The translations under genes and the position numbers were made by a program. Below, piece after piece: positions 44,352 to 64,000 of a stretch of DNA of 64,000 bases. The first letter of the stretch is position 1; every line of letters begins with the position of its first letter. Under the pieces are notes generated by a model that made no database searches, was not told where the DNA came from, and saw only the letters and a list, made by a program, of their open reading frames with translations. Source of the DNA: Bugula neritina (Eukaryota; Animalia; Bryozoa); NCBI GenBank assembly GCA_964035545.1, contig OZ037765.1, positions 7,946,698 through 8,010,697 on the forward strand, read 5' to 3'.

Positions 44352-45992
44352 ATGGCAGCAACTCTGAATTTATTAGAATCCGCTTTAGTTTCACCTACTC
44401 CTGTACCAACTTTAGCAGATGTCTTCAAAGACTTTTGGGTAGGTTAATATTTCTATAAACCTAATTGATAAAATCTAATCGACATTGATATATTTTATTA
44501 TACTTGTAGTAGTCATTCTAATTCTCTATCTGAGACTAGTGGCAATTCTAAGCCCAATGGACATCTATTTAAAAGCTCTCAAAGTGTTGCTAAAATAGTA
44601 CCATTACTATTATCTTGGTAGTGTTACTATTGACTAGTATTCTAATATTGATAGCCTACGTTCATAGTAATATTAGCATATTGATATTTATTGAAAGTGT
44701 TACACATTGATATTGGTAACATTGGACTTGGTATTACTATTACTATTAGTATTACTATGTCTATTGTAATTGAGTATATTAGGCAAGCTGTTACAGTTGG
44801 TTTCTTAGTTAATTTTTAAATTGGAAAAGTTCTAAAGACTAATTTACATCCTGAAAACCTGTCAATGTGCAAAACTCTACCGATATGCACATAGAAGTCT
44901 CTTGAAGTTATTGTGTAATTATCAGTAATTGGCGATTTTGTGTATATTCATTAAAAAATAGTGCCATTACATTTAGTTCTATATTACGGTAATTCAAGAC
45001 CAAGTTACTCCAACAATCTGCAAAATTAAATGTAAAAGCAATATGCGACCAACCCAACAGATTGGCATTTCTGCTATTTTGCAATTTTATCTCGATATGG
45101 CACTCCCGCTAACAATTTTTTGATATGAAACCACTAGCCTATAAGTATAATATTAACTGGTATTAAATTAAAAGTAACTTTTAAATTTTTGCTCTACTCT
45201 GAAGATGTGTACGCCAGTATTTCAACAAGGCCCTTAAAAGAAGAATTGAACTTGGCGCTTAGTGTTTTAAAGTAGAACTAGTACTTCGGCCATTTAAGGC
45301 CAAAGTGCTGATGCCTGTAAACCCACCATGTTTTACTTTTAATGTAAATGGTGCATCATTTTTTTATTTTAGTCCTTGACATTTCTATTTGTAGAGCCCA
45401 AGTTTTGCAGCTTCTTATTTAAACAAGGGTGTTAGCCAACAAATACCAGGAAATCAAATGCCATCTGCTGAAAACGGCTACAGTGTGTCGAATTTCATCA
45501 TTGAACATGTCATGTCCATCCACAACAAATTCGGCATGAAAGAAGCTGAAAAGGTGGTGACTGAATTATTAGCCGACGTACCAGCAATAGAGTCGGCAAG
45601 GTGGGTACCACTCTAGTCGAGTTAGTTTAGATTATAATTAAATTGAAATTTAAAACCTAAATTTTAAAAGCCGTTTATACAACTCGTAATTTACCTTGCA
45701 TTTTAGACTAAAATGTCGCGTTATGAAGAGGGTTGAGCAACTAGCTATTAAGAAGAGAATTCAACCTTTGTGCAGCTTCTGCAGAAACAATGGCCTACCA
45801 CCCGAACTGTATATGAATCACATTTTGAAAGATTACCTCGGCCGGGTAGCCTGTCCAATCCTAAGACAATACACGTGCCCCAAGTGCGGAGCTAATGGAG
45901 ACGACGCCCACACCATGAACTATTGTCCTTATAAAATCACTGGCCTAATATCTCCACCCAGATCGAGACTGCATTCTTGTACTTCCATTTAA
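44352..45992 (+). CDS. nanos: Nanos RNA-binding protein (about 192 aa)
   Basis: Exons 44352-44438, 45395-45600, 45707-45992, phase-consistent. Tandem CCHC nanos finger CSFCRNNG...NHILKD...VACPILRQYTCPKCGANGDDAHTMNYCP. AATAAA at 46212. Confidence 0.95.
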
Positions 45993-46939: not shown

Positions 46940-49900
46940 TCACTTTCTTTTCTCATATCGTACGACTGATTTGGATGGTGTGTGAATCATATTTTGGTAG
47001 TTGGGTTCAGGGAATTCGTCCACCGCACTGAGTTGGTACTGTTCGAGCAGGACGGACCATATCGTCTTATTCTGTAGGTAAGCAAATGACTCGCCAATAC
47101 ACCTATGCCTGCCAGCTCCGAAGGGCACGTAACAAAACTTGCTGTCTGAAGTAAGGCCATCGTTTTCCATAAACCTGTCAGAAAAAATAGTTTTGCTTCA
47201 ATTTTAGTTTGTACTGAAAAACACCTCCCCTCTCATTATAATACTTAAAACCTACTTGAAAGCATTACTGTTTCGAAATCTTCTTCAGAAACCAGAATTA
47301 TTTTAGTGACGAAGACAAAATTGGTTAAAGGACAACTGAACAACAAGTAGACCATTTTGAGCTGCAGCGAGATGTACTAACTAGCACGTTACTAAACAGA
47401 ATACTAGTCTCTACAGCCAGTAATGGTGTCATGTCTGCGAATATGTTCAATATTTTCCAAAACACAATAATAAAATTTTGCACAATCATTAACAAAAACA
47501 GAGATGTCACAAAACCTGTGAATGGTAAACCAGAACTTTTACTCCAGGACAATGCGGTCTGATGAAATACTTTATGTGGCTGTTTGGGGGTGACTAGAGT
47601 ACAAGAATATGAGATTTTGCAATTTGTCTATGCAAATCAGTTTGACCAGACCCGTAAAATAAGGTAAACAAACAAGAGAATGAGCTTAGCAGCACTGGGG
47701 TAGGTGTTAAACGCAGTAAACAAGACCAGGTTGTCAGCTGTTGTAACCATTTTTACTTGCGTATCTCATCAAGATAGATATTAAATACCTAGTTCTATTT
47801 ACAAGTAAACTTGTCAGTAATATTACTGAACGTTGCTGAGTCTTCAACATTACTTTGGTAACAAGTTTATGAAGATAATTGAGAAGTTATAAAAATGTGA
47901 AATATTTGCATTTTGAAATATATGTAATATATGTAGTATAGTTAATATATACACTATATATAATATAGCTATCAGGAGTATAATACCACGGTATAATAAC
48001 TGATACACAATTACCATTTACTAATAAATTTGCATCCAAATACCACATATGAGTGCCAACATAACTTTTAGTGTAAATGACAAATGGTTAGAAGCTACAA
48101 GTCTAAGAATATTTCAAACTTATATTCACCAATTTTTGGACAAATATGCTATTTTTTGCTAAGCATGGTTTCTGATGATTGATTTGGTGCTTGGTTAAGA
48201 CTTCTATTTAAAAGTAGAAAACTTTTAGTAGGCTATAGCAAAATATATTTCACAAAAACCCGCCTTTTTACACTGCCATCCAATAACCTAAGGTGACCAC
48301 TGTACCCTTTGTTATGTTTATTCCTACCCTACAGGCAAATTCAATGAGCAAAGGAACAAGGCATCAATGGGCAAAAAATCGACAAACCTCATTCCTATAA
48401 TCACTATTTTACCTCCAGACTGCATGTAATAGGTTGTGATCCTGAGTTTTACAAATAAAATTCCATTTACTGCTGACATACCTTTAAATGGAAGCTTAAC
48501 TATTTACATAGATTTGATGAAGATTTTAGCAGAATATTTCATAAATATTATGGCACTAAAACATTAATTGGAACAGCTGATATAATTTTACCAAAGTTAT
48601 CAATATAATATAATATATATACAAAATATCATTTTCAATAGTGCCTGCACCAATATAATATATTATATAAATAATATATATCATATATTTATATTATATA
48701 ATACATTTAATATTATATATATTTATATAATAGGTATATAATCACCTTTCAGGATTGAAGTTAGCACACTCCTCTCCCCAAATTTCGGTCAACCTTTGAT
48801 TGGCAGTTGGAGACACACAGACAGAATGGTTAGCAGGAATGGTATAGCCACACACATTCTAGAAAATTCAATATGGAAGTGATATATCCTGACTGCACAC
48901 TTCAACCATTGTAACTGTTGAATGGCTGGTGATGACCAAAGACTGGCCTTTGATGTTGGCCAATATGATGAGCAGCCAAAGCACTAGTAGTTTAGATCTG
49001 TAATACAGATTAGTGTTACCTACACCACTGGAAGACTTGAGTAAGCAAGTCTGGCATACAATAATATGTACAATGGACAGGTAAATCTTGTTCTAGGAGG
49101 CTGCAGAATGCAACTCTTGCAGAACTGAAGTTGAAATGAAAGTCAACTTTGAACTTGGGATTCAGCCATAATTGATTTTGCAAAGTACAGGATGGAGTTG
49201 CAAAGTAATAGGTAATTTGTTCAACAGAAAGCTGGAGAATATGCCATTCTCAAACGATTCAACAGAAGAATTGACATCGGTGGATATTTTTATTGCCATT
49301 GTAATGACAGCTAGGCTTATGAAGACCACAAACTTCTCCTTTGCCAAGGGGTCATCAAGCCACAAGATATTTGCTTTATAAATTTTAGACTATTTCGCAT
49401 TTCGAAACAATCAGCTAAATCCAAGAGAAACTACATTAAATAACCCAAAGGTATTAATTTTGAATGTTGCATCAATCAAGCAGTTACACTGTAAAGCAAA
49501 TCCTTTGCTGAGAAAACTATCTCGAACTAGCAAGTTATCATCAGAGAATGACTAATTTTTTAAACTCCATTATTTATAGCCCACACTGTTTGAAAGAAAT
49601 CTGGCTGGCAAGTAGTTTCAGCTAAAAATAAACTACTGAATATTATAACTTGTTCTATGCAGCTTAGTCATGTATCTTGTTTACATAGTTTTGCCATTTA
49701 CTTGCTTCCGGTAAACCTGGAATTCTACCACACGGCATTGACTGGCCAAAATTGAGTAAATAAGTGATATATTATTGATATGCAGTTGATGAGTATACAG
49801 CCTTGTAAGCGGCAGCATTCCAGCAGCGGTGCCAGTAAAAGTCATCAGCTAGAGCAAGGTGAATGACAAACCAGTGACCTTTTGCAAGCAGCAAAGACGT

Positions 49901-52900
49901 AGTAAAGTGGCTGGAGGCAGGAATAGTTTGGTGACCCTAAAGTGAGCATTAAAAAGGTTCTGATGCTGAGATAAATGGCATGCAAGGTGCACCGAGTGAC
50001 CCATACAGCCGCAGACGAACTCTTGAAGTAAACAGCTCAGATTCAGTGCAGTTCAGTTGTAACTCAGCCAACTCGTGGCAGCCTCACCAAATGTAAATTA
50101 TTGGGAGTGGACAAAATTCAATAACCATTTGGAAATGACAGCTTAACCAATGGTTGCAGTGTAAGTGACAAAGTAATTTAAATAATATTCCATAATAATT
50201 TGCAATTCATATTTAATGGTCACAATAATATGCACGAGTGAAGACATAGTAGAACTACTAATAACATTATTCTTATTGACACGACTAAGAAATTTAATTA
50301 AAAATTACCAGAGGTTTCCTGGAGTGTCTGATGATCACGTGTATAGGTGGTCGAAGTCTCAATGTCTCCCTAAAGGCATTATCCAACACACGCATGCTCT
50401 TCAACTGATCGTAATCAACAGGTTCAAATGTAGCACCTCGCACCTGCGACACACAAAATACTGAGCTCAAAATTATGACAATTTCAAGTGAAGAGTTGAA
50501 TAAGAACGTTAGGTTACCTGAAAGGTAGGTGCAGTAATGGAGAAATTGAAAAAAGCCTGTGTTCTAGATTAAAAATGTAGCAAAAGAAGTTATGTTCTCA
50601 CAAGAATTTCAACCTGCGCCCCAAACCAAAATTTAAAAAGAAATTTAAAGAATTTAGGCTATCTCAATTTCTCCACTACTGCTCCCAAATGAACATTTGA
50701 GCTTGTAAAAGTCCTGACAATCATAAAAATACATCTTAAACAATTATATGCTTTGCCCATTACTGATAATTATGGTCCATCTCTGGCCCATGTGACTAGT
50801 GACACTGCACTGTTATACCCAAAGGATAGTCAGGTGCAAACTTGCACTCAGTGATCACCATAGTGTGAAACTGTCTGCAGTGTCATACCCACCATAATAA
50901 ATTCCATCAACTCCTGAATTGAAAATTTCAAAGGGCCATTTGATTGCAAATTTATTCTTAAAATATAACTGAGAACAGGAAGATTGGTGAAATGCATTCC
51001 ATTTAATTTCTGGTGACACAAGCTATACTGTTATGCAAGTGTTTAGATTCTCCATGCACTCACACTATTTTCAATCAACACCTTTTTGTAAAGCAAAGTA
51101 AGGTTTTAGAGGCATTAATTTTGCAGAATTACAAAAAACATAGTTTTGCACCTTCTACCAGACCATAAAACCTAGCTAGTCCTACTAGGCTATGCAATGA
51201 AGCAAAATATGTTTTCCTAGGACACTCTTCTTAAGGTACATTTATACCTTCAAGATTTTCAATCAGAAATTCAATTTGGCTAGTTAAAAATTTTACCAAG
51301 ACTATTTTTCAGTAAGACTATGAAAGGGTGCTCGAATGGACGATATTGACTGAAACTCTGTATTTTTTTCAGCAAAGGTATAAATGAACCATTCAGATTT
51401 AGCTACTTTTCTGACAATAAGCCAATTTATGAGTCTGCAATTATTCTGGGTTTGAAGTCTGAAGTTGGAGGAGAGTTTAGTAATACTTTTAAGGAACATT
51501 TATGGGCAGTAATGGAAGAAAAATGTTTCAGTAGCCTATGTATTTTTAAGTAATTTTTTTATTTAAATCAAGTTGAAAATATTGATTACTCAAATATTGG
51601 TAAACTGTTTTAAATTAATTATAACAAATTATTTAGCTGGCACTAAAGCTACTAATAAGATTTGGTTGGAAGATGTTTGATGCATAATATTTTTCAGGAT
51701 TCCATTATTATAGCCAATACCTGACATTGCTCCTCATAGCACTGCCTCTGGATTTCAGTATTGTGGGCCAGAAAAACACCCAGCCAGGAGCTGGTGGAAG
51801 AGGAGGTGTGCTGACCAGCCATCAACAAGCCAATCAGCATCCCAGCTATTTCATCATCAGTCATGTACCTCCCACTCCTGCAACACCAACAGCTGTTAGT
51901 TAACTGACTGCTGCCATTCATTTAGATGCAGTAGTGAAGAAATTGAGATAGCCCAAGTTCTTTAATTTTATTATTAAATTTTGGTTCGGGATGCAGGTTG
52001 AAATTTTTATGCTGCATTTTTGATCTAGAACACAGGCTTTTCTCAATTTCTTCATTACTGCACCTACCTCCTGCCATTATAACACAGCAGCATCTATTAA
52101 TATATGAAGACAAGTTGACCATCAGTTTGCATTTAATATCCACACCCACATACTCTGAGCATGCTATTTTAGCTAGTAACAAAAATAAAGTCAAGTGGCC
52201 AATAAAAAAGAATCAGATTTAGATTAACAAGTCACCAAGTTATTGTTGCAAATGTGCTTTTCCTACACAACGTTGTTTTTGTATAAAATTGTCAGGTTTA
52301 TAAAAAAGAAGCAATCATAAATCTGAAAATGAATGCAAATTTATCAGTTGAAAAATTATTTTTTTACTGACAAGTTTGATGGCAAAAAATACTTAGTTTG
52401 TAGTTATACATACAAACAGGCTGTTAGCATATATCAACACAAAAGAACACACTTGTATGGCGTATCCAGTAGAGTCTGCAACATATCTTCTCCCTTGTTT
52501 CCAGATGCCCTGCGTTTCTCTATTGCCGCATAGAATATCTTCTTCATTTCCACATGAGCCGCATCTCTCCTCCTTAACTTTGGTACCAGGAAATGCAACC
52601 ATGAGGGGAGGAGCCATGCTTCAGGGCAGAACCCCTGATCCAGAAGGTAGTACAGGTGGGCTACTCTCTCATCCAATATGGATCTGATCTCAGGTCCTGA
52701 AACAACCCCATTCTTTCACCAATATTCAATACTCAAAACTGTCACCATTATTGCTGTGTAAACAGCAGTTTACATGTGTGAAAGTTGGGGTCATGTCTAT
52801 TTGCTAAATTTACTTCAACTAATCCATGACACATCCTAAGCTTGGCAAATAAGCAAATACAAGGCTGACACTGTGGTAAAGAAATACAATCAGCTCAGCA

Positions 52901-55900
52901 AGCATCTGGTAGTCAAAAGAGGATTTGCTGGGAGGGAGAGGGGGATTTGAAGCTCTAGTTTTGATTATAATTCTAGTTGAATATTGCTGTAATTGTTGAA
53001 TATTTTAAAAGGCTGGCACATGTTTGTATGATGTAATTCTCAAACAAACATCACTACATACTATGACAGAACCACCAGCTTTCCATGGTCTTATGCCCAT
53101 GACACACTACAGTCGAAACTCGACTGTGGCGGCCATTTTGAAGCTGCTCGCGCATACCTTCAACGTCACGTCCTACTTTTTGCTGGTCACACTACAGTTC
53201 ACTACAAACGATGAAAGCTAACTGTCTCTAGTCTCGCAGTAAACTTTTAAACCAATAGGAATGCCATAAATCAGTTTCTGCAGTATCCGCAGTAACCAAC
53301 AATTAAATTTAGCGCAATTTTTTGAGATTTACTAGCATAATTTAATAAGATTTTCTAGTTATTTTCATTCTAATTTACTAGCTTCAATTATTCAAAATTA
53401 CTAGCTTTATTTAATGATATTACTTAGCTTTATTCAAGCTCATTCACTAGCCTAAAGAACTAAATAGTACGCTAATAAAATTCAACCAAATTAGAAAAAC
53501 TAAATATGCAGATAAAATTCAGCAAAATTTATCTAATGAATACTTATTTTCATGATTTATTGAAACTTTCATACATAACTTCATCATAATTATTTTAAAA
53601 GTAAAATAATATAATTTTCGAAGAACCAAATCAAATAATAATGCTCGCTAGTAGCACGTGGAAAAAGTAAAAGCACTTAACCAATCAGGGTTTACCTGGC
53701 CAGTCAGTGATTGGCTGATCGCTCAACTTCAGCGATGACAGTTCGACATGTCGAACTTTCATCGCATCGCTAAAAACTGACAGTTGCGTTCAGAAATCAG
53801 ACAGTTGTGACGTCACAGAGGTCATCGCTTATGCCCATAACACACTACAGTCGAAACGCGACTGTGGCGGCCATTTTGGAGCTGCTTGCGCATGCCTTCA
53901 ACGTCACGTCCTACTTTTTGCTGGTCACACTACAGTTCACTACGAACGATGAAAGCTAACTGTCTCTAGTCTCGCAGTAAACTTTTAAACCAATAGGAAT
54001 GCCATAAACCAGTTTCTGCAGTATCCACAGTAACCAACAATTAATCTTAGCGCAATTTTTTGAGATTTACTAGCATAATTTAATAAGATTTTCTAGTTAT
54101 TTTTATTCTAATTTACTAGCTTCAATTATTCAAAATTACTAGCTTTATTTAATGATATTACTTAGCTTTATTCAAGCTCATTCACTAGCCTAAAGAACTA
54201 AATAGTTATAGTACGCTAATAAAATTCAACCAAATTAGAAAAACTAAATATGCAGATAAAATTTAGCAAAATTTATCTAATGAATACTTATTTTCATGAT
54301 TTATTGAAACTTTCATACATAACTTCATCATAATTATTTTAAAAGTAAATTAATATAATTTTCGAAGAACCAAATCAAATAATAATGCTCGCTAGTAGCA
54401 CGTGGAAAAAGTAAAAGCACTTAACCAATCAGGGTTTACCTGGCCAGTCAGTGATTGGCTGATCGCTCAACTTCAGCGATGACAGTTGAACATGTTGAAC
54501 TTTCATCGCATCGCGAAAAACTGACAGTTGCGTTCAGTTGTGACGTCACAGAGATCAACGCTTAGCCTCGAAAACGCGTTCAAGATGGCCGTTTTGACTG
54601 TAGTGTGGCAGCCCCATTAGCCTCGAAAACGCGTTCAAGATGGCCGTTTCGACTGTAGTGTGGCAGCCCCATTAAGGACACGAGATCGATCTGAGTTCGA
54701 TCTCCACAGACCGACCAGCTCAGATCGACTGAGATCGATTCATCGAAAGTCGGTGAAAGAAGACTACTCTTAAAGTGCCCAAAGGTGAACATGAACTGTT
54801 GATTAAAGATGTCCATCACATATGATGTTACATCCTTTCTCTAGCTGTCCACACTACAAGATATGCTGACTCGAAACTGAAAAGAATTATATCTCGTACT
54901 CAGTAAGAATTCAGTTCAGCATTTTTTGTTTACTTGTAGCAACAAATAGTCCAGTTTGTTAACACAATTCAGTAAGATCTACCAATACAATTCAGTAAGA
55001 TCTACCAATACAATTCAGTAAGATCTACCAATACAATTCAGTAAGATCTACCAACACAATTCAGTAAGATCTACCAACACAATTCAGTAAGATCTACCAA
55101 CACAATTCAGTAAGATCTACCAACACAATTCAGTAAGATCTACCAACACAATTCAGTAAGATCTACCAACACAATTCAGTAAGATCTACCAACACAATTC
55201 AGTAAGATCTACCAACACAATTCAGTAAGATCTACCAACACAATTCAGTAAGATCTACCAACACAATTCAGTAAGATCTACTAACAATTTAGTGAAATTT
55301 ACTAGCATAATTAAATCACATCTAATATGTAGTTGAGCCAAAATTTAGAACAAATTATTTATTTGCATAATTTATGTACGTGTACAAATATAATATGACT
55401 AAATTTATAATTTAACTACCATTCATTAACACAATTTAGCCAAATTCATTAAATATAAAATTTAAAGACTACTTGAGATTAATACATTGCCAATGGATAA
55501 ACCAACAATATTGGTTAGTAGCAATGGAACAAGTAGAACCCCACAGCCAAACAACACAGACCAATGGAATTTATTCACAGCTCAACCTCAAACCACTATT
55601 AAAAATAGACCCCTGAGCTTTAAAATCAGATAGCTGCAACACAGGCCATACATAGCACACAAACAACAACCAACCAGTGGAGGACCAGGCATTATATAAA
55701 TACCAAAGTAACAAGGAATAAGCCACTTACCGTGTAAACAATGGCTAGCAGTCATCACAATCATTTCTGAGAATGCTTCAAACAAATCTGAAATATCAGA
55801 AATTATTGTTGAATGACAAATCAGGGTGATAATGATGTTTTGAATATAAATGATATTTTGATAGTGATACCTAGTAAGTTTACATATGATGATGTAATAG

Positions 55901-58900
55901 AATATAATCACCTATCTCCCCTTTATCTCCCCAACGAGTGAGGTAGTCACGGACTTCTTGCTCTATTATAGGCACATACTCCTTAAACCTTGCAATATTT
56001 AAACCAGTTTTGAACATTTTCTTCTGCTCAAGAAAAATCTACAAAATAAATTACATTTATGGTAAACTGAACAAAAAAAACAAGCACATCAGATTCTAAA
56101 CTAAGCTCCGCAAATAACCAGTAACCTATTCAACCTTCCAGTCAAATGTTCTTTGCAGCAGGAAACAAACTTATACTTCCATTACAAAATACCCCAGCTC
56201 ATAAAATGACTGCATCATTCAAGACTTTTACAAGAAAAAATTAGTTGGCTTTCTTCAGGAAAGTTTCTGTTACTTTACTTAACACTAAAACTTCAAAAGA
56301 TATCATAACTTGTGGAATTTTCAGATAAAGCATTGTAAATCATGTGAAACATAAGAAACTAAGCAGATGAGCTAACTCCGTGCCTTGCTGCTAGATTTAC
56401 TAGATTTCACCTCAAAGAAATTCAATTGAAAATGAAAGTAGAAAATTTCTTCTGTAATAATATCTTTGAATAGTAAGACAAGTATGAGTGGATTCTTACA
56501 TCATTTGGCACGTCATAGGCCACGCCTTTGCCAAAAACAGGGGTGACCAGCTTAGCATACACATCTTCTGCATTCAAATCCTCATTCTTGCTGTTGAATA
56601 GGAGTGAGCTAGCCTCGTTACCCATCAAATACGTGAATTTCTTTCCAGCCATTTCAATGGTGAAGACTGGCCCATACTACAACAAGTATATTTGTTTTAA
56701 AAACTCATTAAACTTATTTTAAATAAGTGTATGAGTTGCTTTAAATCAGGACTGACAAGTTATATTTGTGTAGTATTAGAATCTGCAGATATCTTGGCTA
56801 CGATTGAAAAACAATTTTAAAGTTGTATACCCATTTGAAATTGAATTCATTCATCAGCTTGAATATGATCAGTAAAATCTACAGTACGTTATTTTGTACA
56901 CAGTTCAACATGAACGCTCTTTTTGATACTCCTATAGGGTGCTAGATAGCTGACTACTAAATTGAATAATGATTTTAATCCTAACTGTAATTACAATATT
57001 TATCCTGAATATCAATCAGTTAGAGTTTGATGAAAAAAATAAAAATTGAAGTCATCTGTATCAGTTTATATCCTAATCACACTAACGAATCAAGGCGAAT
57101 AGAATCAAACCCGATAGTTGGTTACTATATCATCAATTTGAATTTAGCACAGCAGGTGATCAGTAACTTATCATTACAATATCAGTTTATCATCATACAG
57201 TTCACAGTTGGTATTAAAATAATGTTATCACCATATATCACAACTGGTTTTTCCTATATCAACACAGGTCTTTATTGCGCGTTGAAAATAGGCTATCTCG
57301 ATTGTTTCATGTTCAATATTTTAGTAGGCAGTGACTTTTAACTTTTGATATCTGTAGTAGAGGAGGTTTAAATGTTTTCTCCCCTGGCATAACACATATA
57401 ACCCTATGTTTCAAACTGTTGCACTATTTTAGTGACCAACCAGTGCAGCAACTAGGAACAATATGTAATGAAATGAAACACCAAATTGTCATCAGCAGGT
57501 GAACTGATATTGCAGATTAAATGAGAAGAAGTGTACGCAAAAATTATTATAAAACCTATTCGCATGGGCACACAACCCTGAAGCTATTACATAATATTTC
57601 TAGGTAGTAATGCAAGTTCTATTCAGCCATTCTCTTACTAGCTTTTCTAACAATCATTTGCTTATGAAGCATATTAGCAAAACACAAGCTTCTAACTTTA
57701 CGCACTAAGTATTCCATGCTGGGAATTTTTTGTAGCAGCAGAGGCTCTGTTTCTAAAAAACAAGGCAGCTCGGAATTTTTTCAAAGTAAACTAAACTTAA
57801 TAAGAATTGTCTATTCTTATGTACATTTCATGTAAACAATTCATCAATTATTACCAATACATTATAGATATTTAATCAATGTTCAAAATAATGCATACTT
57901 TAGTAAATTAACACAGGGTGTGGTTTTGATGCACTTAAGTTTAATCAGAAGAGTAAATCTGTAAGATTAAGCAGGTGTTGAATGCAATAACCAATCATAA
58001 TGAAACTGTACACACTTACAGATGTCTATAACTTACCTGGTTTTTCATCCTAACCAAGAAATCAACAGGATTTTTATTAAACTCGATTGCTGAACCCAAA
58101 AATGGAACTTGTGATGGGATAAATGGAGGAGCATCTTTTGCCTACAAAATATGAAAGCAGGAAAATAATTACAAGTTCATATAGATGGAAAGTCAAACTT
58201 TGGCTTAAATGTCACAATATTTTATTGTGATTAATTAAGAAATATGTGCAGCTTGAAATTTTCATGGTTACATGCAAGTACATTTACTTGATTTTCTAAT
58301 TATTTTTATTTGTTGATTTGAAAATGAAAATCGAGTCCATTATGCTTTTTGTAAATAATATAAAACTGTGCTAGTTCTCTCACCCAAAGTATCACTTCAG
58401 AAATGGCAAACCAATAAATAGCATTTAACATTAGTTTACCAGACATTAGCAAAAGAGCACTACGATTAGGAAACATTGATTATGGCACACAAAACATTCA
58501 AGGATTGTAAGCAAAATTTTCAAGACTCAGTTAGTAAGAAAAATTATTGTAAAAATAAAATAAAAATGTTTTATTAATAATGTTGCTGATAAAAATTACT
58601 ATGCTCATTCACCATCATTTGTTGTTACATATAATGATCACTTTACCGGTGAGCTTGTTGTTTTCGCTAGTATAACCAAAATTATTCAGATAAAAATATG
58701 CTAAGTTTGAATTTCATAATTTAAATAATCATAATGTAATTTCAAATTCCCAGGAACTAATAATCATAATAATAGCATTGATATTAGCTTAGCCATGAGT
58801 AACCTGTAGTCACTACTTTACTTTGAAACTTGAATAAAAATGGTAATACTTTTTATCAACACTTGTAGTTCACTAATAGCAGTAGTAAAACATAAACTTA

Positions 58901-60381
58901 CCAGTACCAATAGTTATATTGGTACTATCAATAAGCATGTCATTAATTAACTGAATTGGACCAGAATAACTTGTTAAGCAGTGAAATTTTTCAAGAATTA
59001 AATCAATTACATATAAATTTATGATTAATACTACTCTAAATCCTTTTTAATTTCATGAGTTGTTTCCCACAAAAAGAGAAAATTAAATACTTTGGTTCTT
59101 GCAGTTATCACTGAAACATAAAGCTTGTCTTTTTATTGAATGTTACGGCGTTTAGGGGAGCCCATCAAGTACTTCACGAGTTACAAATTTTTAATACTAA
59201 TATGAAGTCAGTCTTCTATTTTAACCCTAACCTCTATTTTCCAAATAAAAGTAATACTGGTTGCACTTTGGTTCTTTTTCAAAACAGGAACAGTTTGCTT
59301 GACTCAATATAGATTCAATTCATTCTGGACTAGCTTTAAAATTTTCAATTTTTGACAAATATTGATTCCAACTCGAATTCTATGCCAAACATATTCATAT
59401 TGATTTCCAGAAATGAGCTAATAGTATTAGTACCACAACTATAGGTTTAACTATTACTATTCACTATACTGATATTCTACTAGTGGGTGCAGGTCATATC
59501 GTACACATTTGGTAGGTCGTTTTGTACACATCAATATTTATATATATATAGACTAACAATAAAAGACATAATTTTATATTTATTTATTATTTCATATTTG
59601 ATGAGTCATACAGTAGGGCTCACAAGTATTAGTAACTTGCACATTTCATTTCACTATGCGTTATTTATTATTGTGACATGTAGGTGTTGGGAGGGGGGCA
59701 CTGCTCTTTTCTTTTTAGTTTAGATATTGATATTGTTATCAGTAGATGGCAGCACATAGTTGATAAATATATTTTTTGCCTCAAAAACATGCTAGGAGAA
59801 AAAGAGAGGTGGGGCGCAATAAATAAGTAAGGTAGTATCATTCAAGTAGTCATCTAGTGTATTTATTATTTATTATTCAGTTTGTGTACAGAGCCACTAT
59901 TTTGTATAGGAAACGACAATAACCACTACTACTACTATTACTACTACTAGTACTAGGAGTAGTATTAACGTTTTCCAAACAGAAGTGCTATTACTAGAGT
60001 ACCATTATTAGGTCTAGTAGTAGTACTACTAGTACTAGGTCTAGTATTACTACTAGTACTGTAGTAGTACTGCCGCTACTAGTACTGTAGTTGTAGTAAA
60101 TGTAATGGTCTTCAATTGTAGTTGCCGTTGGTGTTGCACCAACTCCAACACTAGTTTTAAATTTTATATATTTTTATAATTTAACAACTAATATCAATAT
60201 GCTAACAAACCTGAATGTTTGCCCTTCTGAAAAATTTGATGTAGATGAAGACAATTCCGAGCACAGCAACGACAGTGGCGAGTTGAAATGTAGCACTAGC
60301 TGTTAAACTGAAACTAGGTGAAAAGGTAGTTTTAGTCTCAACATCAGCTTCAGCTTGGGTGTGGAATTTGTTACTTTCCAT
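46940..60381 (-). CDS. CYP51: Sterol (lanosterol) 14-alpha-demethylase, cytochrome P450 family 51, about 506 aa
   Basis: Ten phase-consistent minus-strand exons: 60381-60211, 58141-58037, 56676-56500, 56038-55912, 55787-55731, 52696-52453, 51877-51721, 50443-50309, 48858-48746, 47174-46940. Signatures: N-terminal TM anchor, [22 protein letters not shown]-helix [22 protein letters not shown], and heme loop [12 protein letters not shown]. An in-frame upstream ATG exists at 60549. Confidence 0.97.
50523..50692 (+). mobile_element. About 170-bp MITE, copy 1 (CYP51 intron 7)
   Basis: TIRs GCAGTAATGGAGAAATTGA / TCAATTTCTCCACTACTGC. Homologous to 51917-52069 in the opposite orientation. Confidence 0.8.
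51917..52069 (-). mobile_element. About 155-bp MITE, copy 2 (CYP51 intron 6)
   Basis: Its reverse complement aligns with 50523-50692 (AGGTAGGTGCAGTAATG...AGCCTGTGTTCTAGAT...TTTCAACCTGC...CTATCTCAATTTCT). Confidence 0.8.
53094..54671. mobile_element. Two nested copies of an about 790-bp PIF/Harbinger-type non-autonomous element
   Basis: Outer copy is 53094-53831 plus 54620-54671; inner copy is 53832-54616. TIR core CACACTACAGTCGAAAC...GGCCAT(T/C)TTG. TTA flanks both the outer (53091, 54672) and inner (53829, 54617) copies. Confidence 0.85.
54961..55282. repeat. 23-bp minisatellite, 14 copies
   Basis: Unit AA(C/T)ACAATTCAGTAAGATCTACC repeated head-to-tail with no spacers. Copies 2-4 carry the T variant. 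Confidence 0.97.
59925..60100. repeat. (ACT/TAG)n-rich low-complexity tract in CYP51 intron 1
   Basis: ACTACTACT/AGTAGT/TAGTACTA mosaic. Confidence 0.8.
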
Positions 60382-60599
60382 AGTACTGCTCACTATGGTA
60401 GAACTACGTTCAAATTTCTCGGCTATACATTTTGCTCCCCATATAAATAATATAATTCCAACTTTATAGACAACACTAAAATTTTGCAAAAATTGCCAAG
60501 CATAGTGAGAAAAAGAACGCATTTTTTCTCTCTTGGTGGGGAGACACATTGCTACTGATGTTGCTAACTTGCAGAAGTAGCTACGCTTTGTAAATGAAT

Positions 60600-60900
60600 G
60601 TATATTTGCTTAAAAGACTAAGTCGTTAATTTAAATTTTTAAGATATTAAAATTAATTATGTTTGAAAAAAGCCTATTATTTTATTTATTGGCAAAATTT
60701 CACTCTAAACTATTATTTTACTGAACAAATTTTATAGGCTATGCGACTTTTTTTAATGCATGGATACAACGAATTATCGGCTATTGGCTAGTTTTTAAAC
60801 ACCTGATGACCACGTGCTAAACATCTGATGCGGTTTCACTTTGTAATTTTTTTTTATTTCACTTTCAGTGATACGCGATATCAGAATCGGTATAACGATA
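60600..60900. promoter_or_regulatory. Putative bidirectional promoter shared by CYP51 and the oxidosqualene cyclase
   Basis: ATTGG (inverted CCAAT) at 60688 and 60783 and E-box CACGTG at 60811, in a CpG-richer patch. The cyclase ATG is preceded by a splice acceptor (TTTTTGTCAG, 63373), so its first exon must be upstream. Confidence 0.5.
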
Positions 60901-61019
60901 TCATTGTGATAACTGTGCGTACATATTTATGCAATTTAGAATTCATACTGTCAAATATAAATAATGTAATCATATAGCACTTTATTTGTAAAATACTTTG
61001 AACTTGGGTAAAAATTAAT

Positions 61020-61350
61020 ACTGACAGTGACACTGGCACTGTGACTGTGACACTGACAGTCACTCTCAGTCACAGTGTCACAGTAATCGTAGATCGAGAT
61101 AAAGATGTTCATGATCACTTCATGTTCAGCTTGAGTTTTACACCATCACCATGACGACACTCATACTGATACTGTCATACTGACACTGAATTTGATAGTG
61201 ATACTGGTACTCGTACTGATATTAACTATTAAGTGACACTCAGTCTCACACTGATTAGTATTACCATTGTGATTGATTCACACTGAGTTACTCATAGTGA
61301 TACTGATAGTGAAACTCATTCTGATTGTGATTGCCATGGTGATGGTGATC
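61020..61350. repeat. Degenerate 6-bp-periodic tract (CTGACA/GTGACA/CTGATA)
   Basis: Runs such as CTGACAGTGACACTGGCACTGTGACTGTGACACTGACAGTCACT. Confidence 0.7.
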
Positions 61351-61599
61351 GGCAATATGAGTAGACCTAGTTTGAATTTCAAAAAGCAATCAGTATCACA
61401 GTCAGAATGAGAATGAGTTTGACAATAAATATAGTTATAAAATTAAATGATATAAATCTGAATCACAAATAACTATAAGCATTCTGATTTTAATTTTATT
61501 TGTGGTTTGCATAATTCTTTGACTTCAACTAGGCCTATTAGTATTACCTTGTAGTTGTTTTTGATGGTGCAAGTAGCTGACTAGAAATAGAATTTTAAT

Positions 61600-62837
61600 C
61601 ATCATCATCATCATCTTGCTGTCTGCCGTGTCCGACTATGACTTCTGATGTATCATTAGTCTTCATCTGGGTCTGTCAAGTGACAGCATTTGCCATTTGC
61701 CGAGAGATATCTCCTTGTCTTTAAGGTTGCGTTTAATGGTATCTTTGTAACGGAGCCTCGGTCTGCCAATGTCACGGGAGCCTTCTGTTAGCTGTGAGTA
61801 TAAAACCTGTTTTGGGATCCTGGTGTTGTCTAATCTGTTGATATGTCCGGCCCATCTTAGATTTCTTTGAATGAGGGTGTCATATAGACTGGTAATGTTG
61901 GTTTTCTGAAGGATCTTCATATTAGATACAAAGTGCCACCATTTCACTGACAATATCTGTCTTAGTTGATTCATAAGAAAGGTATTTAGCTTGTGTGCCG
62001 TTATCTTATAGACTGTCCATAACTCCACTCCATATAGCAGTGTAGATAAAACAAAGGCTTGGTAGACTGCACATTTTGTCTTGGTTGTCAGGTCTCCGTT
62101 ATCCCAAACTCTTTCTTGTAGCCTTCCGAAAGTTTGTGACGCTTTTGACATTCTCAATTGGAGTTCTTGATCAAGTTTGTTGTTGTTTGTGATGGTTGAG
62201 CCAAGGTATTTGAAGTTCTTGACTGTGTTGAGGATTTCTCCATCTATACTAATTTTTTCTCCCTCATCATGTTCTCCTGGTGGTGGTTGACACATCGTCT
62301 CTGTTTTGGTTATATTTATCTTTAGTCCAAAGTCTTTGGCAGATTTTGCCTAACGGGTGATGATTTCTTGAGCCTGCTGATGGTAGTGGGCAACAAAGGC
62401 AGTGTCGTCAGCAAACATGAGTTCTCTGATGAGTACCTTTCTTGTTCTGGTGGAAAATTTGAACTTGATTGACATTGAACAAGTCAGCGCCAGGTCTTAA
62501 TTGAATTCATACACCCTTATCATAGCCATCAAAAGCATGGTTCATAACCATAGTGAGATAGATAGAGAACAGAGTCGGAGCCGGAACGCAGCCTTGTTTT
62601 ACACCGTTTGTGATCTTGAATGGTGCTGAGAGATCTTCTTTCAGGTTGACAGAGGCTTTCATTCCCGTATGTAGGGCTGCAATCAGGTTAGTGAACTGGT
62701 CTGGGCAGCCAAGCTTTCTTAGAACCATCCACAATGTCGATCGGTTTACTGTGTCGAATGCCTTGGTGAAATCAACAAAGATCATGTATAGAGGCATATT
62801 CTGTTCTATGCATTTTTCCTGAATCTGTCTTAGTGAG
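61600..62837 (-). mobile_element. 5'-truncated, disrupted RTE-clade non-LTR retrotransposon
   Basis: RT motifs FVDFTKAFDTV, GVKQGCVPAPTLF, ELMFADD, FKYLGS and LRWAGH...RIPKQVLY...GRPRLRYKD. Contains a frameshift and an in-frame stop. (GAT)n 3' tail at about 61600-61615. 14-bp TSD AATAGAATTTTAAT at 61586-61599 and 62838-62851. Confidence 0.93.
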
Positions 62838-63382
62838 AATAGAATTTTAATACTAATAGTAATACTCATAAACAATAGACAAACTATTAGTATTACTATT
62901 AGTTATTACTGTAAAGTGATTACTCATAAGTGGTACTAAACTGGTCACTGGGAAAATAAATTTAAAACTACAGCCTTCATATACTCCGACACAGTATATG
63001 GACCCTTACACCACTTTCACTTTGAGCTATATTATAACTAAAACGAGGTGACATTAGCTATTAGTAATACTGATTTGAATAGATGTACCTCTGCTCGCCT
63101 TTGCTGGATCCTGTGCCTACATACTCTTTTTTACGTGTTTAGTAATAATATTCACTTTCTTAGTAATCAATACTCGCCGGATCTTTTGCATTATTAATAT
63201 TTTAGAAAGCTGAAAATTGAAGAGCACAAAGTGCTATTAACTTCTTCATATTGAACCTATTTTTTAACAATTTATGAAAAAATTTGCTCTAGTCTGATTA
63301 TTTTATGTACAGGTAAAGTTTTTACAATTAAAACGGTACAGCTGTTGAAGAAAGAGTCTTATATTTTTGTCAGATTCAAAGA

Positions 63383-63830
63383 ATGCCAAAATTCAAGTAT
63401 GCAAATAATTTGCGGAGAAACAGAGGTGGTCCTTATAAGACCAAACCAGTGACTGAATTAAGAAGATGGCGTCTCCGTAATGTTGGTGGCAGGCAGACTT
63501 GGCATTATTTAGAATCTAATGAAGAATGCGAAGCATGGCCTCAGACTTTACTTGACAAACATTCATTGGGTTTATCAACAGTTAGTAATTTATTTTATGT
63601 AAAAAATTTAAAACATACATTTTGAAGTTCAAACATTATTTTTTATGTCTCATGAATAGTAAACATCATATTATTTTAATATTGCTGTCAGGATGATTTA
63701 GCACCATCCCTACCTCCTGCCACATCTGCCAAAGCATCCTCATATAATGCTCTCAAGTTTTATGCTGCTTTACAAGCTGAAGATGGTCATTGGGCTGGAG
63801 ATTATGGTGGTCCTCTATTTCTCATGCCTG
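63383..63830 (+). CDS. LSS: Oxidosqualene cyclase / lanosterol synthase, first two coding exons (continues beyond the window)
   Basis: Exon 63383-63580 encodes [21 protein letters not shown]...GRQTWHY and exon 63692-63830 encodes [29 protein letters not shown]. These match the conserved N-terminus of animal oxidosqualene cyclases. Confidence 0.93.
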
Positions 63831-64000
63831 GTAATACATTTCTTAGCTATTTATTTTTGCCCAGAAACTTGTTAGTACTGAAATACTGCAAATTTATGTG
63901 TTCTCGGGATTAGCATGAAAATATTTATTAAACTTTGTATTGATATTGTATTAAAAATGTGTTAAAATATTCAAATTAATGTTAATATGATTATATTTGT

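Follow-up and report, generated by a model that had tools for sequence, protein, structure and literature searches.

This study examined a 64,000-nucleotide stretch of the genome of the bryozoan Bugula neritina (GenBank assembly GCA_964035545.1, contig OZ037765.1, positions 7,946,698 to 8,010,697 of the forward strand; hereafter the window), in which a cytochrome P450 gene, CYP51, and an oxidosqualene cyclase gene, assigned here to lanosterol synthase (LSS), are immediate divergent neighbors. The cyclase converts 2,3-oxidosqualene to lanosterol, and CYP51 then removes the 14-alpha-methyl group of lanosterol. Both genes are intact and transcribed, and their head-to-head arrangement is conserved in other animals. 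A first-pass annotation of the window had described CYP51 (minus strand) and the cyclase (plus strand) as divergent, with start codons approximately 3.0 kb apart and a 1.24-kb long interspersed nuclear element (LINE) between them; the distances found were 3002 bp and 1242 bp. Its description of both genes as intron-rich and animal-like was borne out by 10 and 17 coding exons, intact and expressed. The features of the locus, in window coordinates, are as follows.

46940..60588, minus strand: CYP51 (sterol 14-alpha-demethylase) gene, delimited by open reading frames (ORFs), open frames, and transcript contigs
60381-60211, 58141-58037, 56676-56500, 56038-55912, and 55787-55731, minus strand: CYP51 coding exons 1-5
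52696-52453, 51877-51721, 50443-50309, 48858-48746, and 47174-46940 (with the stop codon), minus strand: CYP51 coding exons 6-10
60589..63371, no strand: spacer of 2783 bp separating the CYP51 and LSS transcript 5' ends; presumed promoter region, shared or adjacent
61600..62841, minus strand: 5'-truncated LINE copy (reverse-transcriptase part), 1242 bp, between CYP51 and LSS
63372..64000, plus strand: 5' part of the LSS (oxidosqualene cyclase) gene, with the transcript start at approximately 63372 and the ATG at 63383
63383-63580, plus strand: LSS exon 1 (coding)
63692-63830, plus strand: LSS exon 2

The CYP51 model comprises 10 exons with a coding span of 46940-60381 and encodes 506 amino acids with 0 internal stops. 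Exon borders were set by reading frame and GT-AG boundaries, plus transcript evidence where possible, and 9/9 introns are GT-AG. Database searches were performed with single exons; the joined protein models of the two genes served only to verify the frame and, in the case of LSS, to align the protein locally with individual reference proteins. P450 matches in Pfam were obtained for three CYP51 exons. In the PDB, exon 3 matched human CYP51 with approximately 80% identity across 60 residues, the B' region among them (E 1e-26), and all 52 of its matches were CYP51 enzymes. Exon 10 aligned to residues 380-452 of human CYP51 with an E value of 8e-25, whereas other P450 families appeared only at approximately 1e-4. 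The last exon contains the heme-binding cysteine motif FxxGxRxCxG, and exon 7 contains the helix I signature of CYP51, AGQHTS, which is also listed for Capitella CYP51A1 (PMC4229089). The gene is present as a single copy in the genome. Judged by these sequence features, which set it nearer to CYP51 than to other families of P450 enzymes, the minus-strand P450 is CYP51, and its predicted activity is that of a lanosterol 14-alpha-demethylase.

We took 60381 as the CYP51 start because it yields the usual N-terminal length. Two in-frame ATGs at 60522-60549 on the minus strand lie upstream of this presumed start and within the transcribed leader. Initiation at the first of these (60549) would lengthen the protein by 56 residues, among them a second hydrophobic stretch. 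Because this ATG sits inside the transcribed leader, the assignment of 60381 is tentative.

The LSS gene runs beyond the window and ends at extended coordinate 69661 (C1:8016358; C1 is the contig that carries the pair), 5.7 kb past the window end, where 15 further coding exons were located on the same contig by a junction solver guided by Haliotis LSS. The first-pass annotation had named a cyclase disrupted downstream as a possible objection; the complete model proved to be uninterrupted, with 17 coding exons, 737 amino acids, and GT-AG boundaries at all introns. The ORF from 63383 encodes an N-terminus typical of oxidosqualene cyclases, and the Pfam family SQHop_cyclase_C scored above the cut-off on two exons. 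End-to-end identity was 69-72% with lophotrochozoan LSS, 64-69% with deuterostome LSS, 61% with that of Trichoplax, and 52% with that of Capsaspora. No other oxidosqualene cyclase locus was found in the genome.

The residues that bear on product specificity, which the first-pass annotation had recommended for inspection, were of the lanosterol type. The exon containing the catalytic motif DCTAE (VSDCTAEGL) matches residues 440-472 of human oxidosqualene cyclase. The Thr of GTNGSQ and the Cys and Val of DCGWIVSDCTAE, just before DCTAE, correspond to human T381, C449, and V453. According to published mutagenesis work, these three residues separate lanosterol synthases from cycloartenol synthases. 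The plus-strand cyclase is thus predicted to be of the lanosterol-synthase type, with lanosterol as its product. A 28-nt micro-exon of the gene (extended coordinates 66056-66083; L002:2753-2780) encodes the conserved IGLDGMKM just before GTNGSQ and is easily missed by gene predictors.

The CYP51 ATG at 60381 and the LSS ATG at 63383 diverge across 3002 bp that contain no gene and only the LINE fragment. Sequence motifs in the spacer comprise one CACGTG E-box (60811), two CCAAT boxes (60688 and 60783), and one TGATCAC heptamer (61112). The LINE has three reverse-transcriptase-like ORFs on the minus strand (61663-62295, 62350-62475, and 62507-62875), and this reading is based on motifs judged by eye; the one ORF scanned against Pfam (61663-62295) returned no match. 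A genome search yielded at least 40 copies of the element, each aligned to query positions 1-1242. Identity is 96-89% for the nearest copies, and the insertion is therefore fairly recent. The copies of this family fall into two tiers, approximately 15 at 89-96% identity and many at 66-70%, which suggests a recent burst of one LINE subfamily.

To document transcription, we mapped transcript contigs of four RNA runs, each from a different study, to positions 58001-64000. The splice between CYP51 exons 1 and 2 (60211|58141) and that between LSS exons 1 and 2 (63580|63692) were each present in contigs of four studies, and the start of CYP51 exon 3 follows exon 2. The contigs measured 1.9-2.3 kb for CYP51 and at least 2.5 kb for LSS. 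The 5' ends of the CYP51 contigs lay at 60534-60588, and the LSS contigs started at 63372 in three runs; the observed 5' ends are thus approximately 2.8 kb apart, or approximately 1.5 kb without the LINE. Many repeat-derived transcript contigs fall on the LINE piece. When contig depth was scaled to run size, the rank order across the 4 runs was equal for both genes, a weak result because there are only four points and contig depth is a poor measure of expression. Thirteen probable RNA runs, the four above among them, contain 8-15% of the words sampled from 58001-64000, as expected from exons alone, and a public DNA run contains 89%. Two of the RNA runs are labeled 'symbiont metagenome'.

The transcript contigs of all four studies differed from the assembly by approximately 3% in the exons, at shared positions. 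This observation suggests that the RNA-sequenced individuals belonged to another strain or cryptic species than the assembled one.

The first-pass annotation had proposed a comparison of microsynteny across animals. We located full-length LSS proteins of named animals in their genomes with 10-kb flanks and inspected the genes alongside. The results revealed the same head-to-head pair in six other species of five phyla, all in the same orientation, so that the pairing is not accidental.

Acanthaster planci (starfish): CYP51(-)/LSS(+) head to head, 1.7 kb between gene models
Branchiostoma (amphioxus): CYP51(-)/LSS(+) head to head, 484 bp between gene models
Ptychodera flava (acorn worm): CYP51(-)/LSS(+) head to head, 606 bp between gene models
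Lampetra planeri (lamprey): CYP51(-)/LSS(+) head to head, 1.8-2.3 kb between gene models
Lingula anatina (brachiopod): CYP51(-)/LSS(+) head to head, 1.4 kb between gene models
Solemya velum (bivalve): CYP51(-)/LSS(+) head to head, 152 bp between gene models

The P450 adjoining LSS matches the Bugula CYP51 exons in order in 6/6 species, with 50-76% identity, far above the level found between different P450 families. The gene models of Branchiostoma, Ptychodera, and Solemya lie within the limit of approximately 1 kb used for bidirectional pairs, whereas the observed 5' ends in Bugula lie farther apart. In Trichoplax sp. H2, CYP51 and LSS are also neighbors, tail to tail and 1.9 kb apart. In Patella, Lineus, the skate Leucoraja, and the unicellular relative Capsaspora, the 10 kb on either side of LSS contained no CYP51. 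The Lamellibrachia locus was uninformative; its LSS model is partial, and the locus begins inside the gene.

The linkage extends to sponges. A recent report describes a sponge lanosterol synthase, functionally validated by expression in an erg7 yeast strain, that adjoins CYP51, and a colocalization kept in four demosponges, Acanthella cavernosa, Geodia barretti, Halichondria panicea, and Xestospongia testudinaria (PMC13483135, Adv Sci, August 2026). Because the linkage occurs across bilaterians, Trichoplax, and sponges, it is most simply ancestral to animals, and we conclude that it probably is; the head-to-head form dates to at least the bilaterian ancestor. The first-pass annotation had treated the pair as a peculiarity of one invertebrate. 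That view has to be replaced by one of an ancestral animal state that was lost in jawed vertebrates. Our additions are the presence of the pair in a bryozoan and its being common to seven bilaterian lineages (Bugula and the six above) and a placozoan. A literature search, which did not extend to the supplementary list of Irimia et al. 2012, returned no report of the pair in bilaterians.

The neighbors of the two genes in vertebrates and their relatives bear on how the pair was lost. The order in the lamprey is CYP51, LSS, KRIT1. In Ptychodera, a huge gene (4784 amino acids) convergent with LSS ends in a strong PACT domain (E 3.5e-24); the corresponding huge gene of Acanthaster (5021 amino acids) has a weak, partial PACT match below the Pfam cut-off. 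The PACT-neighbor regions of these two loci are L011:28528-29768 and L013:36912-41765. The PACT domain marks pericentrin and AKAP9, and the sequence evidence points to a gene of the pericentrin/AKAP9 type beside LSS in the acorn worm and starfish. In the skate, LSS lies between a PACT-domain gene (PCNT) and a speriolin-like gene, without CYP51. In humans, the two genes are unlinked, as the first-pass annotation had stated: CYP51A1 is at 7q21.2 in one locus with AKAP9 and KRIT1 (PMC11438911), and LSS is at 21q22.3, with SPATC1L as its immediate neighbor and PCNT a few genes away (PMC13723271). These findings point to an old three- or four-gene block that split after the vertebrate genome duplication; the ancestral block would have been duplicated, with LSS lost from one copy and CYP51 from the other. 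Gene orientations around the block vary between lineages, which is a caveat to this reading. In Bugula, the PACT (pericentrin/AKAP9) gene is not beside the pair and is located on another contig.

We next consider whether the pair is part of something larger, because the first-pass annotation had suggested the edge of a larger cluster and had recommended a search for neighboring sterol genes beyond the window. The nearest gene on the CYP51 side is listed below.

45696..45992, plus strand: nanos-type zinc-finger gene (Pfam zf-nanos, E 4.9e-24)

This single-exon gene lies tail to tail with CYP51, approximately 950 bp from the CYP51 stop, and has no sterol role. The rest of the 47 kb on that side holds ORFs that were judged by eye to encode a CSPG-repeat protein, a proteasome subunit, and an ADAMTS-like protein. 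LSS is followed by an NHL-repeat gene (L002:7053-9600), which is on the opposite strand and tail to tail with it; a 4.6-kb transcript contig containing LSS may extend into this neighbor. A whole-genome profile search with the SE, ERG4_ERG24, FA_hydroxylase, and p450 families placed squalene epoxidase on contig C4 and not on C1. The FA_hydroxylase genes on C1 are megabases from the pair, and no strong P450 match was found within 1 Mb of it, in a search that scored best candidates only. The only sterol gene found on that part of the chromosome was a DHCR7-type gene of the ERG4/ERG24 family (C1:8183686-8185825; L008:3686-5825), 175 kb beyond LSS. Its named relatives are 7-dehydrocholesterol reductases, the best being that of the bryozoan Watersipora subatra (55% identity), and its identity with those of molluscs, annelids, and nemerteans is 40-46%. 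We estimate that any of approximately 10 other sterol genes would lie that near with a chance of approximately 2%; the linkage is loose and may be due to chance. Clusters of the plant or fungal type consist of at least three adjoining non-homologous pathway genes, whereas only two are present here. The locus is a two-gene pair and not the edge of a larger cluster.

Several other matches were recorded elsewhere in the assembly. Two apparent tandem ERG4/ERG24 genes lie at C3:14096795-14102906, where profile positions 300-432 are matched twice, and a further copy lies at C9:8242961-8245602. Foreign-looking matches to sterol reductase, fatty-acid hydroxylase, and P450 families occur at C45:72530-73663, C259:52882-55456 (three tandem FA_hydroxylase copies), C244:12726-14136, C224:8138-9532, and C318:29475-29837, with many in-frame TAA and TAG codons and almost no TGA. 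This codon usage suggests that these small contigs derive from an organism other than Bugula in which stop codons have been reassigned, for example a ciliate.

The spacers of Bugula, Acanthaster, Branchiostoma, Ptychodera, Lampetra, and Lingula (Solemya was excluded) were scanned for the canonical SREBP element TCACNCCAC, looser forms of this sterol regulatory element (SRE), the E-box, CCAAT and GC boxes, and the cyclic AMP response element (CRE). Perfect NF-Y-type CCAAT boxes occur in four species, and nothing is consistent across the six spacers. The best shared word was TGATCAC (with an ATCAC half-site), which is present in 5/6 spacers and, in three deuterostomes, occurs at a distance of 53-149 bp from the start of the LSS gene. 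SREBP control of the pair was rejected as a candidate on the absence of an SRE from the six spacers scanned.

Taken together, CYP51 and LSS form an ancient divergent pair of single-copy housekeeping genes for consecutive sterol steps, and we consider it probable that the pair was retained through a shared control region. The arrangement was inherited from at least the bilaterian ancestor, and the linkage probably from the animal ancestor. Transcription of both genes would begin at a short control region that they share, or at tightly adjoining ones, and this is most likely the reason that the pair was retained. A break in such a region would harm both promoters, and sharing would keep both enzymes expressed together. 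In Bugula, the recent LINE would have lengthened the control region from approximately 1.5 kb to 2.8 kb, with both genes still transcribed.

Several findings weigh against retention through a shared control region, and some of them also speak for the adjacency being a neutral leftover. According to this alternative, the ancestral adjacency has no function, short head-to-head spacers rarely break, particularly in slowly rearranging genomes, and the consecutive pathway steps are a historical accident. It is a serious rival, which we regard as possible and on the whole doubtful. The start spacing in Bugula (2.8 kb, or approximately 1.5 kb minus the LINE) exceeds the usual limit of approximately 1 kb for bidirectional promoters, and the spacer tolerates a 1.2-kb LINE. 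The expression evidence consists of four contig depths per gene, a poor measure. The pair is absent within 10 kb in Patella, Lineus, and the skate, is unlinked in humans according to the literature, and is inverted in Trichoplax. Patella, Lineus, skate, and humans are all sterol producers as far as is known. Animals can therefore manage without the arrangement, which has been lost several times without obvious harm. The canonical SREBP element or a loose form of it was found in 0/6 spacers scanned, no regulatory motif common to the six spacers was found, and the TGATCAC word is not significant and no more than a lead, because 63% of shuffles also give a 7-mer common to five species. Since no SRE occurs in any scanned spacer, shared regulation as the cause of the conservation is something that we infer. 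Moreover, most of the species retaining the pair are known for conservative gene order. Nevertheless, a neutral leftover does not account readily for a neighbor that is the pathway successor, which we estimate at approximately 1 in 1000 by chance (approximately a dozen post-squalene genes among 15-20 thousand genes). The other surrounding genes are not conserved between loci, except for the PACT gene in deuterostomes, whereas the pair survives in at least five bilaterian phyla, with the linkage present also in placozoans and, according to the sponge report, in sponges (PMC13483135).

Two other explanations were weighed against retention of the pair through a shared control region. The pair might belong, at its core or at its edge, to a larger plant-like cluster for a specialized metabolite of the triterpenoid or saponin type, a reading we consider very improbable and largely refuted. 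The oat avenacin cluster is built around a cyclase next to a P450 of the CYP51 family, and the DHCR7-type gene lies 175 kb downstream on the same chromosome. However, both Bugula genes are single copy and must therefore serve primary sterol synthesis, and the cyclase has lanosterol-type residues. The flanks are likewise unrelated (beyond CYP51, the nanos, proteasome subunit, ADAMTS-like, and CSPG-repeat genes; beyond LSS, the NHL-repeat gene), with squalene epoxidase on C4 and no strong P450 match among the best candidates within 1 Mb. The remaining explanation, an artifact in the form of an assembly misjoin, a contaminant, or horizontally acquired DNA, is hardly credible. The assembly does contain small foreign-looking contigs with in-frame TAA or TAG inside gene matches, and the transcript contigs are approximately 3% off the assembly; nevertheless, the pair is embedded in a 35.6-Mb contig (assembly size 216 Mb), 89% of the words sampled from 58001-64000 are present in one DNA run, and both genes have many spliceosomal introns and animal-like sequences. 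A misjoin between 60.4 and 63.4 kb, which the first-pass annotation had raised, is argued against by the absence of any N in the region and by the recurrence of the arrangement in six other animals.

We further propose, tentatively and with slightly less than even confidence, that the pair is a pan-animal two-gene 'sterol module' of pre-sponge origin. A shared control region would have held it together for over 550 million years, until in jawed vertebrates reciprocal loss followed whole-genome duplication and left AKAP9-CYP51A1-KRIT1 in one copy of the block and PCNT-LSS in the other. If the proposal is true, the module would count among a very small number of ancient gene clusters for primary metabolism known from animals. 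Animal genomes are commonly said to lack metabolic gene clusters. The genes for these two consecutive sterol enzymes have remained adjacent, in most cases head to head, in lineages ranging from sponges and placozoans to the lamprey. The pair offers a simple case in which to test whether function maintains gene order, the question being whether a shared promoter matches the supply of lanosterol to its removal. The pair is also a clean marker for reconstructing the vertebrate duplication blocks represented by human 7q21 and 21q22. For invertebrates, adjacency could be one clue to whether the sterol genes found in an animal are its own, and Bugula is a bryozoan with intact, expressed genes for early sterol synthesis.

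Among the known systems compared, human LSS and CYP51A1 are orthologous to the Bugula genes; the compared exons are at least 80% identical, and the catalytic and product-specificity residues are alike. The human genes differ in being unlinked, each near a PACT-domain paralogue (PCNT and AKAP9, respectively) and CYP51A1 near KRIT1, and these neighbors match the lamprey and ambulacrarian neighborhoods of the intact pair. The oat avenacin genes Sad1 and Sad2 and the bacterial sterol operons resemble the pair in having an oxidosqualene cyclase beside a CYP51-family enzyme that acts on its product. Plant triterpene clusters are recent, lineage-specific assemblies of duplicated specialized-metabolite genes and, like the sterol operons, usually contain at least three genes. 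The Bugula pair, in contrast, consists of only two genes, both single copy and of primary metabolism, in an ancient arrangement.

The demosponge report describes the identical two genes as adjacent, with the adjacency kept among species; it is confined to sponges and frames the pair as a small terpenoid gene cluster, and its available text does not mention bilaterians, orientation, or the loss in jawed vertebrates (PMC13483135). The metazoan gene pairs of Irimia et al. 2012 (Genome Res) are similar in that unrelated head-to-head genes are kept across phyla, for which that paper proposes a cis-regulatory constraint such as a shared promoter (PMC3514665). The Bugula pair differs from these pairs in its spacer of 2.8 kb, which is above the usual 1-kb definition, and in that, unlike those of most such pairs, the products of LSS and CYP51 catalyze consecutive steps of one pathway.

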